This document shows, piece after piece, positions 3,801-48,950 of a DNA stretch of 64,000 nt. Numbering within the stretch: position 1 is the first letter of the stretch; each line of letters opens with the position of its first letter. The stretch covers positions 10,282,722 to 10,346,721 of the forward strand of contig OZ037766.1 in NCBI GenBank assembly GCA_964035545.1, read 5' to 3'. Under the pieces are notes generated by a model. The model searched no databases and had not been told where the DNA came from. It worked only from the letters and a program-made list of their open reading frames with translations. The position numbers and the translations under genes were made by a program. Source of the DNA: Bugula neritina. Taxonomy: Eukaryota; Animalia; Bryozoa.

Positions 3801-6800
3801 TACTTATAGCCTATTATGCTTTATTTTAAAAGATATTTCCGCAAAAACATGGCTGTTGAAACCACAGTTAAAATATGAAACATAATATTCAGATGGGGAC
3901 ATTTTTGACAAAATAATTTTCTTTGTGTATTCCTTAGAAAATTTTTATGCAGTATTTATAAATAACAGTTACTATGAATCTTATAAAGAGATGCGCTTGT
4001 GCATAAATTATTCTATATTTCTACTCAGCTAGTTAAAGTATGTCAGTTTTGCACATTTCATCACATCCAGGCTTTTCTGAGTATGCAACTTGCATTATGC
4101 AACACACTCTGGTTTTCAAAAAAAGCTGGTAACTTAAAATAGCCATAATTTTGAGAAAATATCTTCTCAAACGTTGAGAAGAGCCTTTAAAATTCTAGAT
4201 AATCAGAAAAATAATGAACTATATTGGTTTCACTCAAAATAATGTATTTGTAGTAATCATTTCTTTTCCTATGTCAGTAATGAAACTTACAATTGATGCA
4301 AATATTATTTTTAAACCAATTACTGTTAAGATATGAAAGAGTGCTAGGAAGCAAAAAACTTTTAATTGTTCTAAAATTAATAAGCACTTCTAAAAATGTA
4401 TTATAATATGTTTCTGTGGTACTTTGGCTAAACATGTGAGTAACCCCTCTACAATATAATTGTTTAAATTATAAAAGTTCTAGGTTTGCATATACAAGTG
4501 TATAAAGACAGATAGTCTATGATTATCACATGTACTATAGATCTCACCCCCATGATGTTTGAGTTACCCTACATTATCATTGGGGTCCTCCTCTTTGGTA
4601 TACTGATCATCATAGTAGTCTTCATATGCTGGAGGTTAAAAGGGCATCACAAAACCTCTAAATACACCTCCAATAAGGCTTCTTGGCATGTAAACAGCAA
4701 GGATATTGTACTCTTTGAATGCAACGACCCTGGTCTAGAGGATACAAGCAGTCTATACTTACAGGTAGATTTACTTGCCTCTGTGCTAAAGAAACATTCA
4801 CACAGAAACATACTTACATAATAACACATTTTATTATGAGAATTATATTATAGCATTGTATAAGTTTTATGGTCAAGAGTAGGAATAGAAACTATAAGTG
4901 TTATTCTTCAGGCATCAGAGTTTGTGACCGACAGCGAGAAACTAGATGCAGCTGTGAAGGAATTTACCACAGACTTTGGTCACTTCAAGGATCAGCCAGT
5001 TTGTTTGAAAAAAATCATAATAAAAGACTTTCAGCCTACAACTCAGCAAGAGAAAGAACTAGAGCTTGTAAGTTTTGTATCACTATATTGTAAAGGTTAT
5101 AGTTATAGGTTAATGAGCATGTGCACATATATGCATGTGTTAATGTGCTAATGCACTGAAAGTTATATTCTAATTTGCTAGTAGAAATATGTATTCCTTA
5201 TAACTTTTGGTGACTAGAGAATAAAGTAGATGTAAATGTAAATAAAAAGGTGTGCCTCTACTATCAAATATAGTTTGGGGGAAAAAAATTTTTAAGACAA
5301 AATATGCCAATATTTGACTGTCAATATATAGGATGAGTGCATAGCAAAGGATGACATAAACAGATGGACTAGCCTTCAACCTACTTCGTATAAAATATAC
5401 AGTGTATAAAATATACAGTGTATAAAATACCTACATTGTATATAAAATACATTGTATATAAAATACATTGTATATAAAATACATTGTGTATAAAATACAT
5501 TGTATAAATTGCCTACTAATGATGCAAGAAGAATGTCTCTAAGCTAGCAATATAATATCAAGACTGTACTCTAATATTTCTGCTGCAGATGGTGGGCACT
5601 CATCATGAGAATCTCGCTACATTCTTTGGAGTGTGTATCAAACCTTCCCACATACTGCTGATCACTCAATACTGTATTAAAGGAAGTCTGGAGGTAAGCA
5701 ATTTGCTCCATATGTTGCATGTGTTGCATTAATTTTCAGATTTTCTTACTCTGATATTGTGTTACAGTGTTGCTTGTTATCAAGCTGACATTTTTAAACT
5801 TTGTCTTTGTACAATACAGGAGATTTTTCTGTTTGAACCGGTGCATATGGATGAGACCTTCATAGCATCTATAGTCATGGACATTGTAAGAGGAATGACG
5901 TATATACATAAGAACTGTCAACTTGGTGTCCATGGTAATCTTAAGAGCTCTAACTGCCTTGTCACTGGTAGATGGGTTGTGAAACTCTCTGGGTTTGGTC
6001 TCTCAGGTTTACGGACTAAGCACAGGGAAGACAAAGGTATAACACTACATGAATAAAAACTTTTATATAATGTTGGATATTACTACAATAAGCAAAACCT
6101 CATAACAAGCAATTAACTTAAACAAATATTTAATGTCGCTTCCATTAAAGCCGGCATTGCAAAAATATATACTATGCAGCTCTCGTATTTATTTACAAAT
6201 TGTTAAAAATTAAATAATTAATTAGGCATTAAAGTAAAGTTAGATATTTTATCATTTGTTTTTTATAAACGGAATATAATATTTAAATTACATAAGTTTC
6301 TTCCTTATTATAAATTCCTTGTATAGATTACTTAAAATATAGAAATAAGCTGTGTGATGACTGTGTACTTAATGTAATTACCTGCAGATCAGCTGTGGTG
6401 TGCACCTGAGGTGATCAAACATTCAGAAGTTGCTTCTCAAAAAGCTGATGTATATTCCTTTGGAATTATACTGTATGAAGTGATTGGAAAGAGGGGGCCC
6501 TTTGGGAAAGGCTATGCCTTTTCAGTTCAAGAGCTAGAAGGTATGTCAAAATAGTATATGAATTAAAACATATATAAAAAACATTAGCAGCACAAACCCT
6601 CTAAAACATAATGCATATAGTGTATTATAGCATATAATAAGCATTCCATATAAAAACATGCAACACACTCTGAAAGATCGAAGGTTTTAGCTCAAAATTT
6701 TCTTTAATAAACATTTCAAGTGTGCTTCAAGTGTTTTTATTGACAATAACTTTTCTATAGTCAAACAGTTGCTATTCCTTGAGTTATACAAGTCAACAGA

Positions 6801-43429: not shown

Positions 43430-44260
43430 TACATAACTAATAGTAATAACTATAAGTACTAATAACTAACATCTACACAGTAAATACTTTGTAAGTAACA
43501 GTAAAATTATTTTCAAAAGTAAGACTAAGAAGAAATTGATACAAGTCTGATACTCAAGTTAGACAAGATTATGAAATTGAGCAAAAAGTAAAATGTAAAA
43601 TTGATACTTTATACCATTAAACTTAGTAATACGAATGGTGCATTATTAGAACAATATGGCTTATATTTTCATAATAGTACATGTAGAGCAAGACTAAGAC
43701 TACGAGAATGAACAAGTTCAAGTTATTACTTCATAATTGTCACCATCATGATGATAATCATACTTTCATAGTAATAGTGATAGTCTATTGCTACTAGACC
43801 TAACACTATGGGTATCAGTATGGTTATCACTGTGACTATAAGTATAATGAGACTGAGAGCATACAGTCTACAGCTTATAAATATAAGCACAAGTATACTA
43901 TTATATTTAATTTTACAAATATGACTTATTATTAATACTAAATCTAGAATCTAGAACTAGAAGCTTTAGTCAGTACACCTAGTCCTAGTCCAGGAAATAT
44001 CAGGTTAATTTGAATTATCAAAATGAATGTGATACTGATACAATGTCACTGACAAAAAAATTGAATGAATGATGCCGAAAGTAACTATCACTAGCCTTAC
44101 TAGCACTACTAGCACTACCACTACTACTACTAGTAACACTAACTAGCCCTACTCCTAGGGATTTGTCCAACAGTAACAATACCAATATCACTTTCAATAT
44201 AAATATGAATATAATTATAATACTTAATAGTGAAGATGAATAATATTAATTCCTAACTCT
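43430..44260. repeat. Degenerate 6-bp/3-bp-periodic simple sequence upstream of the CANT1 coding exon
   Basis: Runs such as gataatcatactttcatagtaatagtgatagt, actact and tagact/taagac. Confidence 0.75.
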
Positions 44261-44447
44261 AAGACTAGTTACCTCCAGTTACCTCCAGATTACGATCATG
44301 CTAGACCACTAGGTAGCAGAAGCGGCATGCCTCATATGTTTATGGTTGGTCAGAAAGTAAAATGCATACAATAGTCCATAAATTGGTTGCAGTGTGTGTT
44401 GCAATATTGTTTATTAGTACAGGTAAGTTAACCTGTCAATGTTTAGA

Positions 44448-47222
44448 TTATTCTGTGTGTAAATTAGTCTTGCAAAGATTGTTCCCTTTAAGGTCACGGA
44501 TTGTTCGTGGCAAGAAGCTGTTATAATAGCAGTTATTATTGGTGCTGACTGATCTTGGCTGTCCTAGTGTTTGGGCTCTAGTTTGGATAAAACTTTCCGG
44601 GGTATTTATTAGTTCGTCATACGCTGCAGAGAGTGCTGGGTGATATTCTTCCTTTTGGAGTATCCTCATAAGGAGTCTTAGCCGTTGAGTTCTTCTTCTT
44701 TCATCGAGGGCGGCCAGCTCCAGTCTTTCTTTTGCTTCTCGCACTCCTCTTCTACCCTTGATGTTAGCTATGGCTCTCACTGCCCGTGTTTGTACCTCTT
44801 CGATGGAATTTATTTCTTTTGTAGTATAGGGGTCCCAAACAGCAGAAGCATAGTCTAGGTGAGGAAGGCATAGGGATTTGTAAGCCATGAGTCTCACTTT
44901 TTCGGGGGCCCAGTGCAAAGCCCTTTTGATCATCCCCAGTTGTTTGTTTGCTAGCAATATTTTGCTCTGGATATGATTATCAAACTTCAGGTTGGCCTGT
45001 AGAGTCACTCCGAGGTATGTTGATTTGTCCACCTGTTCTAGAACTGTGCCATTTAACGTGTAGTGTGCTGGTATATCTTGCTCTTTGAATGCCATAATTT
45101 TGCTCTTTTTAACATTGAACTCCATACCCCACTTTGAAGCCCAACTTCCTGCTGCATCTATGTTCCTTTGAAACCTTAGTCTGTCTTGGTCATCTGAGAC
45201 AGGCTGGTAGAGGAGGGTGTCATCTGCGAAGAGACCAACTTCACAATCAACACAGTCAGGGAGATCATTTATGAACACGAGAAACAGTATGGGGCCGAGT
45301 ACAGAGCCCTGAGGTACCCCAGACGTCACTGGCAGTGGTTCTGACTTTTTGCCATCGAGTACGACCCTCTGAGATCGGTTTAGGAGGAAGTTGTGTACCC
45401 ATCCGAGCAGATAGTCTTCCATTGGTGCAATTGTTCGTAGTTTCTCCATTAGAAGGGCATGGGGGACCCGGTCAAATGCTTTTGTAAAATCTAGGACTGC
45501 TGCGTGAACAGCCTTATGTTTATCGACATAGTTCAGTATCTGATGGAGAGTGGCGCATAATTGGGTCTCGCAGGACAAGCCCTGGCGGAAGCCGTGTTGT
45601 CTTGTGCTCAGTACATTGTCAACGTTGGCAAGTATTTTACGTAGGATGAGATGTTCTGCCATTTTACATGGGATGCTAGTGAGTGAGATGGGTCGATAGT
45701 TTTGAGCACAATCCTCTGCACCGCTTTTATGGATAGGGGTCACATACGCCTCTTTCCACTGGGTGGGGAGCTTCTGTTGATTCATAGAGGTTTTGTATAT
45801 GATCGCAAGACAAGCGGATATTAGTGGGAGATCAACCATCAGATCTGCTTTCCTCAGGCCATCTGGACCGGGAGCTTTTCCAGGCTTGAGTTTCTGTATT
45901 AACTTGGCAATACCATTGCTGTCGATATCTGGTGGATTATCTATGTTTGTTGAGTTGGGACCAAGTGATGTCAGTTGGTGCCCACTGTTGAACTGGGAGT
46001 GGAAGAATTTGTTGAAGGTTTCCGCACAGTTTTCTGGATCTGCATTAAGGGTACCATCAGTCATTTTGAGTTTTATGCGATTTTTGTTATTTGAGTTTCC
46101 TTTGAGGTGCCGGTAAAAGGGCTTACTGTTGCCTTCTAGGAGTGGTTGGATGATTTTATTGTGACCATATTCACTTTTTACCATCCTAAAGACTTTCTTA
46201 GCTGTTTTCCGGATTTCCTTGTATTTCGCATAACTGAATAGGTCCCGGTTTGTTTTGTAGTGATTATAGCTTTTCCTCTCTTTACGTGATATCCGTCTAC
46301 ACTCTTTGTTAAACCAAACAGGTTCATTTTTAAGCTTAGACGACAGTACTTTCGTTGGGACATGGTCACATATGGCCTGTTGTAGACTAGATGAAAAATG
46401 ATCCCACATTTCTTGTACATCTTCCAATTCATCTAGGTCATGTTTAGTTCTTTGCATATCTTCCCGGAATTTGTTGATATCTACTCTGTGGTAATCTTTG
46501 ACAGTTTTGGAGGTTACTATATGGTGGTCTTTTGCTTTGTTCCATCGGATATTTGCTTTTATCATGGCGTGATCACTTAGCCCTGGGAAGATTACGTCTT
46601 GGGATGTTAAGTCTTGGGGGGAGTTGGTGCAAAGTAAGTCGAGCGTGTTGCCATGAATGTGGGTTGGTGAGGTTATTAGTTGACTTAGGTTATAGAAGTT
46701 TAACATACATAGGAATGAGTTATGAAGGACCTTATCCTGGGCCTTCAGTTTGGGTTGATAAGTGTGCCAATTAATGTGAGGGAGATTGAAATCCCCGGCT
46801 AAGATGATGTGGTCATTGGGGAACTGTTGAGTTAATAATTCTAGGTTGCTACTCAATATGGATACATCTCTATCATGTGGGGGTCTGTAGTAACATCCGA
46901 CAATTAAGCTCTCCTCTATTCTTACAAATATGATCTCGGCACTAGTTTTATCTTCTATGTTAATTTGGGTAGAGCGCAGGTTGTCATTAATGGCAATTAA
47001 GACCCCACCCCCATTTACATTACGATCCTTTCTGTAGATCCTTTTGTTGTTATAATCAAAGATGGTGTGACTTGGTATCATCTGATTTATGTGTGTCTCA
47101 GTGAGGCAGATTATGTCGGAATTACATGTTTGTGATGATAGTTCAATAGTTTTGCCTTTGAGAGATCTTACATTGGCAAGAAAGAATTTTAAACACTGGT
47201 CTGTTTGGTCATGTATCGCCAT
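44448..47222 (-). CDS. LINE ORF2: APE-like endonuclease + reverse transcriptase (924 aa)
   Basis: EN motifs NVRSL, LTET, YRPP, GDFN, TLDL, SDH. RT motifs KAPGPDG, YRPISLTS, QHGF, DFTKAFD, GVPQGSVLGP, FADD, YLGV. No stops or frameshifts. Confidence 0.97.
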   Translation of the reverse strand: MAIHDQTDQCLKFFLANVRSLKGKTIELSSQTCNSDIICLTETHINQMIPSHTIFDYNNKRIYRKDRNVNGGGVLIAINDNLRSTQINIEDKTSAEIIFVRIEESLIVGCYYRPPHDRDVSILSSNLELLTQQFPNDHIILAGDFNLPHINWHTYQPKLKAQDKVLHNSFLCMLNFYNLSQLITSPTHIHGNTLDLLCTNSPQDLTSQDVIFPGLSDHAMIKANIRWNKAKDHHIVTSKTVKDYHRVDINKFREDMQRTKHDLDELEDVQEMWDHFSSSLQQAICDHVPTKVLSSKLKNEPVWFNKECRRISRKERKSYNHYKTNRDLFSYAKYKEIRKTAKKVFRMVKSEYGHNKIIQPLLEGNSKPFYRHLKGNSNNKNRIKLKMTDGTLNADPENCAETFNKFFHSQFNSGHQLTSLGPNSTNIDNPPDIDSNGIAKLIQKLKPGKAPGPDGLRKADLMVDLPLISACLAIIYKTSMNQQKLPTQWKEAYVTPIHKSGAEDCAQNYRPISLTSIPCKMAEHLILRKILANVDNVLSTRQHGFRQGLSCETQLCATLHQILNYVDKHKAVHAAVLDFTKAFDRVPHALLMEKLRTIAPMEDYLLGWVHNFLLNRSQRVVLDGKKSEPLPVTSGVPQGSVLGPILFLVFINDLPDCVDCEVGLFADDTLLYQPVSDDQDRLRFQRNIDAAGSWASKWGMEFNVKKSKIMAFKEQDIPAHYTLNGTVLEQVDKSTYLGVTLQANLKFDNHIQSKILLANKQLGMIKRALHWAPEKVRLMAYKSLCLPHLDYASAVWDPYTTKEINSIEEVQTRAVRAIANIKGRRGVREAKERLELAALDERRRTQRLRLLMRILQKEEYHPALSAAYDELINTPESFIQTRAQTLGQPRSVSTNNNCYYNSFLPRTIRDLKGNNLCKTNLHTE

Positions 47223-48211
47223 TCCCCCGAAGGAGATTTTGTCTGTATTCTCATATTTCTTATCCGATAGTCAGTTTCTTGGTCAGTGTCACTGTTTTCC
47301 CCTTTCATTCGCTTTATCTCTTGCCGAAGGGCATACTGCTGGTCACGAATCTCTTTGCATTCATCAAGTTTGCAGTAGATCTTGCGTCCACGTAGTGTAG
47401 CATTTGTTCTTTTTAGGAATTCCCACTTTGAATATTCGTCTGGAAATTCTATTTTAATCGGCCTTGGTTTGTTTTTGTCAACTGGTCCTGAGGTCTGTAA
47501 GCGTATTGCTCTTAGGGGTTTCGGAGTTGCATGAAAAGTATCACTCGTCATTAAGTCTTTAATCATCTCCAGTGCGCTTTTACCTTCCTGTTCATCTATG
47601 CCATAAAGAACGGCATTATTTTTCCTGTTTTCAGTCTCCCGTTGTTCAATACTCTTCTTCAGCAGGTTTCGAGCACTGTCGCTGATCTCCATCCCTTTCT
47701 TCAAGTTTTCAGTATTTGACTTTGCAGCGTCGGCATATGATTTCTCTAGTTTTGTCATTCTTTCTTCAAGGGCAGTGTTTGTTGCTCCAATCTTTGCATT
47801 AAGTTGTTGCATTATGTCTTCAATTTTATTAAGCTTTCTTGAGTGGGTGCTGTGAAGCGCAAGAGAGTCTTCACCATTGTTGTTCACCCTGTCTCGGCCT
47901 TGAAGAGAAGCTTCAATGACTGGAAGGCATGTGTTGCAGAACCATTTCACATTCTTTTCATCCATTTTGTCTAGCGTAGCAACATCTGAATTGGTGAGGC
48001 TTTGGCAGGTACCATGGAACCAATCATCACAAAAATCACATTGGATCCACTTAGCACCAAATTTTTGAGAAAGGCCCCTTGTATTAGTAACATAGCAATC
48101 GACATTGTTACAAGTTTTGCATTCTGGGTTGGTTGAGTCTTTGTTTTTGTCACTTTGAGACTGTTGTGATCCTGGTTGTGGTTGGCTTTGAGTGTTCCGG
48201 GCACCAGCCAT
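47189..48211 (-). CDS. LINE ORF1: PHD finger, coiled coil and RRM-like domain
   Basis: CKTC...WIQCDFCDDWFHGTC...WFCNTC is a C4HC3 PHD finger, followed by a heptad region and RKNNAVLYGI...PRPIKIEF. The first ATG is at 48211 (the ORF track starts at an upstream TTG). It overlaps ORF2 by 34 nt. PHD-bearing ORF1s are known in CR1-like elements. Confidence 0.92.
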   Translation of the reverse strand: MAGARNTQSQPQPGSQQSQSDKNKDSTNPECKTCNNVDCYVTNTRGLSQKFGAKWIQCDFCDDWFHGTCQSLTNSDVATLDKMDEKNVKWFCNTCLPVIEASLQGRDRVNNNGEDSLALHSTHSRKLNKIEDIMQQLNAKIGATNTALEERMTKLEKSYADAAKSNTENLKKGMEISDSARNLLKKSIEQRETENRKNNAVLYGIDEQEGKSALEMIKDLMTSDTFHATPKPLRAIRLQTSGPVDKNKPRPIKIEFPDEYSKWEFLKRTNATLRGRKIYCKLDECKEIRDQQYALRQEIKRMKGENSDTDQETDYRIRNMRIQTKSPSGEWRYMTKQTSV

Positions 48212-48509
48212 CACGGACAACTAGAATCTCGTGTTGTAGTAACAATACAATATAATAATAATTATGTTTATAATTATTATTATTTATAATACTATACTAA
48301 TTCGTAGTATAGTATAGTTATTGGTTTCTAAGATCTAGAGAGCAAAAAGTTACTTTTTGTATGTTTTTGTATGGGGGAAATTTTTTGTATGCTTTGAGTA
48401 TGTTTGGATATGAGGCACGCCTTACCTAAGTGGTGAATTTTGAACCAAATTGGCATAAGAATTTAAATTTTAAATTTTTGCGTCCGCCATCTTCGCGACC
48501 TTGACCTTA

Positions 48510-48950
48510 CTACTAGAGTAAGACTAAAACTAAAAGTCTACAGCAAAAGTCCAAGACTTAGAACTAACTGAGTAACTTTATGTCTAATCAATGATTATCA
48601 TTATTATTGTCATTATCCTTATGATAATGATACTAATTGATACTGATAGAGAACGATAATTGAAAGGTCGCGGTTTGTACAACTACTAGTACTACTACTA
48701 CTACTAGTAGTAGTAGTTGTACAAACCGCGACCTACTGCTACTATTACTGAGTACTAGTACTACTACTAGTTTTATATTTTAACTTTTAAATAATAAATC
48801 TAAGAGAACTCAAATAGAAATAGAATGCCCCTAAAATTTCACCCGTTATTAGTATTACTAATACAGTAATACTTATACTAATACTAATAGTAATATTAAT
48901 AGTAATACTAATACAGTAATAGTAATACTATCGATCATCGTGATACTCAA
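48510..48950. repeat. Degenerate periodic simple sequence between the LINE 5' end and the CANT1/U2AF2 island
   Basis: Runs of gattat/cattat, gatact, actact and aatact/aatagt. Confidence 0.75.
48665..48734. repeat. Perfect 24-bp inverted repeat around an (ACT)n spacer
   Basis: AGGTCGCGGTTTGTACAACTACTA (48665-48688) and its exact reverse complement (48711-48734). Confidence 0.95.

Follow-up and report, generated by a model that had tools for sequence, protein, structure and literature searches.

The choice of an RNA by its own protein (cis-preference) and the separation of translation from reverse transcription on one molecule are two unsolved questions for long interspersed nuclear elements (LINEs), and for long terminal repeat (LTR) retrotransposons and RNA viruses, base-pairing of the genome ends is part of the solution to such problems. 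In flavivirus cyclisation and negative-strand panhandles the genome ends pair, the paired form favours replication and the unpaired form favours translation, and the pairing sequences co-vary between lineages. Among retroelements, R2 has separate 5' and 3' RNA segments that bind the R2 protein and control the two halves of integration, and TART, with its perfect non-terminal repeats, and DIRS1, with its inverted terminal repeats, are elements other than ordinary LTR elements that carry related sequence in both end regions. In Ty1, two short segments of the genomic RNA, CYC5 near its 5' end and CYC3 near its 3' end, are complementary and interact over a long range (PMC3681743), and in zebrafish ZfL2, of the L2 clade, the cognate ORF2 protein binds a 3' stem-loop and this binding is required for retrotransposition (PMC4176376). 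In this report, we describe a full-length CR1-type LINE on the minus strand of a 64-kb stretch of Bugula neritina DNA (the window), in which a segment of the 5' untranslated region (UTR) is complementary to a segment of the 3'UTR. A full-text literature search, incomplete in its coverage, returned no description of 5'UTR-3'UTR pairing in LINEs, which is absence of evidence only; the pairing, which we find in seven families, is probably a selected RNA structure that has not been described for LINEs.

The 5'-3' duplex in the window element

The two arms (Table 1) form, in RNAduplex, a 14-bp helix with one G-U pair, an internal loop of 1x8 nt and an 11-bp helix with one bulged U, with an energy of -35.5 kcal/mol, and the structure of this duplex is well supported. 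A first-pass annotation, made from the letters of the window alone, had placed the arms at these coordinates and described both helices, the one with its single G-U and the other with its bulge, and both the sequence and RNAduplex agree with it. Its term "end-to-end" does not hold, the 5' arm being not the RNA terminus but beginning at nt 75 of a 297-nt 5'UTR (the 5' end of the LINE is at 48508). The 3' arm does lie near the tail, as had been stated, but the distance given, about 35 nt, has to be replaced by 16 nt to the tail repeats and 37 nt to the 3' end of the LINE at 44268. The minimum free energy (MFE) fold of the whole 4241-nt RNA contains the 14-bp helix across 4 kb, and no inverted similarity extends past the arms in the window copy.

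RNAduplex run without restriction on the whole UTRs yields a long, uninformative structure. Restricted to 36x36 nt, the best 5'UTR-3'UTR duplex has -36.7 kcal/mol, against -19.9 +/- 2.1 kcal/mol and a minimum of -26.7 kcal/mol in 125 dinucleotide shuffles (z = -7.9), so that the comparison with shuffled controls proposed in the first-pass annotation bears the pairing out. In a pairing-aware local alignment, the score of the window LINE was reached by 5 of 4000 shuffles. The window contains a single 14-mer of this sequence and a single complement of it, and no internal stretch of the LINE pairs with either UTR as well as the UTRs pair with one another.

Two copies of the family served for comparison, one in the NCBI assembly GCA_010799875.2 (L004) and one on a 4197-nt Logan contig (L002); the Logan runs SRR4020077, SRR4020086 and SRR4020088 contain assembled copies of the LINE. 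In both of them the 5' arm is bordered on either side by shared element sequence and the outer flanks differ; it thus lies inside the LINE and is carried by the element, as the first-pass annotation had assumed, and is not host sequence. The 5' arm is identical in L002, and its sole change in L004 is an A-to-G at the unpaired position 48422 between the helices; the 3' arm is identical in L001-L004. Both arms were therefore found in three independent copies (window, L002 and L004), of which L004 has a different target-site duplication (TSD), AATAGTAATA, and 8 different extra nt at its 5' junction. Because the other copies are 96-99% identical to the window LINE and the open reading frames (ORFs) are intact, the family is young, and with a divergence of 1-4% the conservation of the arms within the family says little about selection. 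Self-BLAST and tblastn of the window return the LINE itself only, with no further copies in its 64 kb.

Two structural origins for the arms were considered and rejected. Terminal inverted repeats of a DNA transposon or foldback element do not fit arms that lie 74 and 37 nt inside the ends of an element with ORF1 and ORF2, a tail and an 8-bp TSD of the target-primed type, and a twin-priming 5' inversion does not fit the same 27-nt arm in the same context in L002 and L004, with similarity that stops at the arms.

Complementarity in related families

For the comparison between families, 168 further CR1-like LINE loci were collected through exact-protein look-ups, one metagenome-contig scan and one genome-contig scan; viral contigs had no relatives. 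In the family test, the 5' region was aligned to the reversed 3' region by a strict pairing score and compared with dinucleotide shuffles; both UTRs are required, and L088, L092, L087, L089 and L006, each with one UTR missing, were left out. Six related families gave significant pairing: the observed score was reached by 1 of 4000 shuffles in L005, whose ORF2 is 55% identical to that of the window LINE, by 4 of 4000 in L090 (45%), and by none of 4000 in L010 (33%), L016 (32%), L012 (30%) and L027 (29%). With the window family included, seven families are significant, compared with about 0.3 expected from some 52 tests. The same six loci had the top scores in a scan of 79 loci that ignored ORF integrity, in which L148 (z = 3.7; low-complexity) and L018 (z = 3.5; a 15-bp match at a contig edge) were borderline. 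On the ORF2 tree the positives fall into clade A (window family, L005, L090 and L010) and clade B (L012, L016 and L027). Among the five members of clade A with both UTR regions only L091 is not significant, a locus with a broken ORF1 and no recognisable tail; in clade B, L028 is negative. The complementarity of about 200 nt suggested for L010 is weak past the first 50 nt.

The arms are matched to their own partners. Scores of 5'UTR-3'UTR pairs from the same family range from 33.5 to 55.5, compared with a cross-family mean of 22.5 +/- 3.7 and a maximum of 36; in an arm-by-arm matrix of duplex energies the minimum of every row and every column lies on the diagonal, and in all seven families no part of the element pairs with the 5'UTR better than the 3'UTR. 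In the window family and L005, the leaders are homologous (terminal direct repeat, AAGATGGCGGAC box, AAATTT motif and an equal distance of the arm from the 5' end), and so are the 3' ends. Despite this homology, the window 5'UTR scores only 17.5 with the L005 3'UTR and the reverse combination 23.5, both at background; between the two families both helices have been rebuilt through substitutions and through matched insertions on both sides. Ty1-like cyclisation implies complementarity between the 5' and 3' regions of the same RNA beyond chance, maintained while the sequences diverge, and this is what was found here.

The composition of the helices indicates which molecule is paired. In a realignment that scored G-U and A-C alike, 193 positions were Watson-Crick, 24 were G-U and 4 were A-C (binomial p = 1.8e-4), with one further G-U contributed by L016. 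The excess of G-U over A-C points to pairing of the sense RNA and not of complementary DNA (cDNA) or duplex DNA; the first-pass annotation had taken the single G-U of the window element as the mark of selected RNA pairing, and the bias across families upholds that view. In addition, the MFE fold of the full RNA contains the long-range helix in five of the six families checked (window, L005, L090, L012 and L027). Our data make it likely that the pairing of the sense RNA has been under selection.

Several observations weigh against this conclusion. The relatives are mostly single metagenome or read-archive contigs, the limits of their elements were deduced from tails and shared motifs, and in L010 no tail could be recognised. 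Significant pairing is missing from about 45 other CR1-like elements, among them the close relative L028 as well as L013, L018 and L030, so that the pairing is dispensable for this kind of LINE and not general to the CR1 group, and families without it separate clades A and B on the ORF2 tree. The duplex of L016 is missing from its MFE fold, and that of the window LINE has the 14-bp helix only, with a local hairpin of the 5'UTR in place of the 11-bp part. The 3' partner of L090 lies about 30 nt downstream of the site used in the window family and L005, so that the pairing is not strictly positionally homologous. Finally, an automated mapping of pairs from the window family to L005 was broken by indels: the families do keep 5'-3' complementarity with different sequences, as the first-pass annotation requires, but the covariation is not cleanly column by column, and whole arms have co-evolved instead.

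A possible conformational switch and its competitors

The 3' arm overlaps a second structure. In clade A, the ~60 nt that precede the tail fold into a conserved local stem-loop, and RNAalifold on seven clade-A 3' ends gave 10 pairs, six of them with compensatory changes. The outer stem of the window family, CAUGC/GCAUG, is replaced by CACAC/GUGUG in L005 and one L087 copy, by CACGC/GCGUG in L006 and the other L087 copy, by GGCGCUC/GAGCGUU in L089 and by CACUCG/CGAGUG in L090. In the window family, the outer stem contributes its 5' strand to the 3' arm, along with most of the inner hairpin; the 3' partner of L090 consists of the 3' strand and of the spacer that precedes the first tail unit. The 3' arms of L012, L016 and L027 span the terminal hairpin in full, and in L027 the 3' arm also enters the first tail repeat and the 5' arm lies over the ORF1 AUG. 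Because the 3' arm shares one or both strands with the local hairpin, the long-range duplex and the hairpin are mutually exclusive. A conserved "mirror-image" hairpin around the 5' arm was also considered and rejected, RNAalifold on four 5' ends giving no conserved local structure.

The first-pass annotation had offered three ideas for the duplex, namely selection of full-length RNAs by the ORF2 protein, approach of the 5' end to the priming site with less 5' truncation, and a switch between translation and reverse transcription; it had overlooked the overlap with the stem-loop, which favours the switch among them. The best explanation, and one that we hold to be rather more probable than its competitors taken together, is a selected long-range duplex of the sense RNA between the 5'UTR and the last ~70 nt of the 3'UTR, which cyclises the molecule and acts as a conformational switch; the switch as such we put forward more tentatively, as a possibility with less than even prospects. 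In the cyclised state, the 3' hairpin would be melted and a duplex of at least 25 bp would lock the leader, in L027 over the ORF1 AUG. In the open state, the leader would be free and the 3' hairpin would be formed and available to the ORF2 protein, for which hairpin and tail together may be the binding requirement for starting target-primed reverse transcription, by analogy with stringent LINEs. Such a switch would couple the state of the 5' leader (scanning and translation, or binding of the ORF1 protein) to the availability of the start site of reverse transcription. Full-length selection might also be achieved through cyclisation, because cyclisation needs an RNA with an intact leader. That the ORF2 protein binds the hairpin of the window LINE, that the duplex forms in cells and that the switch has this direction and purpose is what we infer from these comparisons.

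Three other explanations are each improbable in our judgement. The first is a panhandle of the minus-strand cDNA, which would bring the cDNA 3' end back to the target site and aid second-strand synthesis and full-length insertion. Every inverted repeat of the sense strand exists in the cDNA also, and arms that are sub-terminal at both ends would suit this role and the earlier idea of reduced 5' truncation; however, the 24 G-U pairs would be A-C mismatches in the cDNA and just the 4 A-C would become G-T, and antisense pairing scores lower in seven of seven families (24 versus 51.5 in L027). The second is pairing in trans, in which the 5' arm of an RNA would join the 3' arm of a second molecule and dimers or chains would arise in the ribonucleoprotein, as in retrovirus or Ty1 dimerisation and unlike cyclisation. 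Sequence analysis is blind to the difference between cis and trans, the evidence for sense-RNA pairing fits both equally and the 3' arm contains the palindrome GGCAUGCC, but whole-molecule folds favour the cis helix and LINEs are not known to depend on RNA dimers, so we give trans pairing little credence.

The third supposes a neutral relic: an ancestor would have taken an inverted scrap of its own 3'UTR into the leader, through template switching for instance, and decay would not yet have erased the complementarity. LINE 5'UTRs are often remodelled, the copies of the window family are just 1-4% diverged and many related families have no pairing, all of which such a relic would accommodate. 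What makes it a poor account is that the UTRs of the window family, L005 and L090 are homologous (45-55% ORF2 identity) and their arms nevertheless pair with their own partners and not across families, that a bias of G-U over A-C is not what neutral decay would predict, and that the relic would need to have originated, or survived, in each of two clades. A site in double-stranded DNA, present in both orientations and bound by a host factor or an element protein, with pairing irrelevant, is highly improbable: the arms are an inverted repeat in the DNA and the YY1-like box described below shows that the leader carries putative protein-binding motifs, but such a site predicts a conserved sequence, whereas the arms of L010, L012, L027 and the window family differ completely and stay complementary, and a G-U bias is meaningless for duplex DNA. 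Chance or an assembly artefact can be practically dismissed. Short inverted repeats do abound in AT-rich DNA (a repeat finder gave 34 inverted pairs in 5.8 kb), but the z of -7.9 and seven significant families against an expected ~0.3 argue against chance, and an artefact is at odds with arms that are identical in an NCBI assembly made independently and in contigs from read archives.

Returning to the switch, its most specific form is one that we regard as somewhat unlikely but worth stating: in a subset of CR1-type LINEs, a riboswitch-like cyclisation would keep the hairpin recognised by the reverse transcriptase (RT) shut until scanning ribosomes or the ORF1 protein open the leader, so that the ORF2 protein would gain access only to full-length, translated RNA. 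If true, this would give a structural basis to the cis-preference and the full-length selection of LINEs. Competition of the leader for the 3' recognition hairpin is a hypothesis concrete enough to be probed with mutants, and the pairing of 5' and 3' arms provides a signature by which the sequences of other LINE clades can be screened. The hypothesis also predicts that the behaviour of engineered LINE-based insertion systems may depend on whether the native leader is present.

Anatomy of the element and comparison with known systems

The window is AT-rich (~32% G+C), with a block of higher G+C at 44-48 kb in which the LINE lies (Table 1). The 5' terminus at 48508 begins AAGGTCAAGGTCGC, and the 3' terminus at 44268 follows two CTGGAGGTAA units. 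ORF2 overlaps the end of ORF1 by 34 nt, and both are intact; ORF1 is 96% identical to the Bugula neritina protein KAF6025285.1 and for ORF2, contigs from read archives encode proteins of 99% identity (e.g. P0001). An endonuclease-RT ORF2, an ORF1 with a PHD finger, and a hairpin followed by a short tandem repeat tail without poly(A) are the features of CR1-type elements; the LINE is thus of CR1 type and belongs to the Jockey superfamily with a PHD ORF1. PHD-containing ORF1s of the Jockey superfamily are treated in PMC4120745.

Table 1. Features of the window LINE, in coordinates of the 64-kb window
Feature	Position	Strand	Description
Full-length LINE	44268..48508	(-)	4241 bp; 5'UTR, ORF1, ORF2, 3'UTR and tail; limits are the start and end of similarity to L004 and L002
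5' TSD copy	48519..48526	(-)	TAGTCTTA; 8 bp, then 10 extra nt (48518-48509) before the LINE start
5'UTR	48212..48508	(-)	297 nt
Box AAGATGGCGGAC	48482..48493	(-)	LINE nt 16-27
5' arm	48408..48434	(-)	ACCACUUAGGUA-A-GGCGUGCCUCAUAU; RNA nt 75-101; 48434-48423 in 11-bp helix, 48421-48408 in 14-bp helix
ORF1	47189..48211	(-)	340 aa; PHD finger, Pfam PF00628, E = 4.5e-6
ORF2	44448..47222	(-)	924 aa; apurinic-type endonuclease and reverse transcriptase; Pfam PF03372, PF14529, PF00078
3' arm	44305..44337	(-)	AUAUGAGGCAUGCC-GCUUCUGC-UACCUAGUGGU; RNA nt 4172-4204
3' arm parts	44337-44324; 44323-44316; 44315-44305	(-)	14-bp helix; 8-nt internal loop; 11-bp helix
Local 3' stem-loop	44297..44329	(-)	Local fold; outer stem CAUGC (44329-44325) with GCAUG (44301-44297) around inner hairpin
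Tail	44269..44288	(-)	CTGGAGGTAA x2
3' TSD copy	44260..44267	(-)	TAGTCTTA; directly after tail

The AAGATGGCGGAC box near the 5' end is kept in L004 (5626-5637), L005 (about 137) and L090 (about 272), and it is found inverted (CGCCATCTTG) in the leaders of L012 and L028. We take it to match the consensus site of YY1, and human L1 likewise has a YY1 site close to its 5' end; the box probably belongs to a putative internal promoter. The middle of the 5'UTR (48300-48390) varies among the three Bugula copies by indels of 30-70 nt (L002 95-140; L004 about 5700-5730), and the first 100 nt, arm included, and the last 90 nt are near-identical. Upstream of the LINE by 157 nt, a 70-bp near-perfect palindrome at 48665-48734 has 33-nt arms that are 94% complementary and a 4-nt loop; it is rich in TAG/CTA repeats, and its outer ends include the reverse complement of AAGGTCGCG, the 5' terminal words of the LINE. 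An Rfam search gave no match inside the LINE, its sole matches being weak ones to microRNA families, far below threshold, at this flanking palindrome.

Other families have different tail units, 9-13 nt long. The units of the window family, L005, L006, L012, L016, L027, L087, L089 and L090 contain a G-GT-A/G-AG-like core, with the variants AGGTAA, CGGTAAG, AGGTAAG, ACGTAAG and ATGTAAG, which resemble the 5' splice site or U1 binding consensus. In L004, the LINE follows the 3' end of an unrelated LINE fragment at a distance of about 300 nt (L004 4666-5303), and at L087 3250-3300 the tail repeats of one copy lead straight into a second, 5'-truncated copy in head-to-tail order, arrangements that hint at insertion into or beside LINE tails.

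The relatives yielded further observations. L093-L098 and L100 form a sister group with a single ORF of 1086-1213 aa, in which a PHD-like N-terminal part is fused to the endonuclease-RT, and these elements have very strong local 3' hairpins and no 5'-3' complementarity. In L092 (40% ORF2 identity), a third open frame of at least 300 aa lies downstream of ORF2 (4134-5036), without a Pfam match, and the contig ends inside it. In the genome-contig scan (L093-L172), many contigs filed under bacterial or archaeal metagenome-assembled genomes carry CR1-like LINEs, many with a long open ORF2, under labels such as Sedimenticola, Candidatus Thiodiazotropha, Metamycoplasmataceae, Nitrosopumilaceae and a Stappiaceae record ("chromosome 48", "chromosome 59"); these LINE-bearing contigs are almost certainly host DNA of animals.

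Among the systems introduced at the outset, the CYC5-CYC3 interaction of Ty1 is the closest functional analogue of the LINE duplex. Ty1 is an LTR element that is primed by transfer RNA inside a particle, with CYC5 beside the primer-binding site, whereas the window element is a LINE, which primes on nicked chromosomal DNA; moreover, the 3' partner in the LINE is a presumed RT-recognition hairpin, and at 21-70 nt the LINE duplexes exceed that of Ty1 in length. Flavivirus cyclisation stands further off; like the negative-strand panhandles, it belongs to viruses replicated by an RNA-dependent RNA polymerase and has no sequence or evolutionary relation to the LINE. R2 resembles the window LINE in that both ends of the RNA are involved, but its RNA segments are each bound by protein and are not complementary to one another. 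The repeats of TART are direct and long, and DIRS elements have inverted repeats at their very termini and rely on a tyrosine recombinase; neither arrangement amounts to a short RNA duplex that involves a 3' hairpin. The stringent LINEs, eel UnaL2 and zebrafish ZfL2, have a conserved hairpin just upstream of short tandem tail repeats, as does the window LINE, but for UnaL2 and ZfL2 a local 3' structure alone has been described, and to this the window LINE adds a 5'UTR sequence that competes for a strand of the hairpin.

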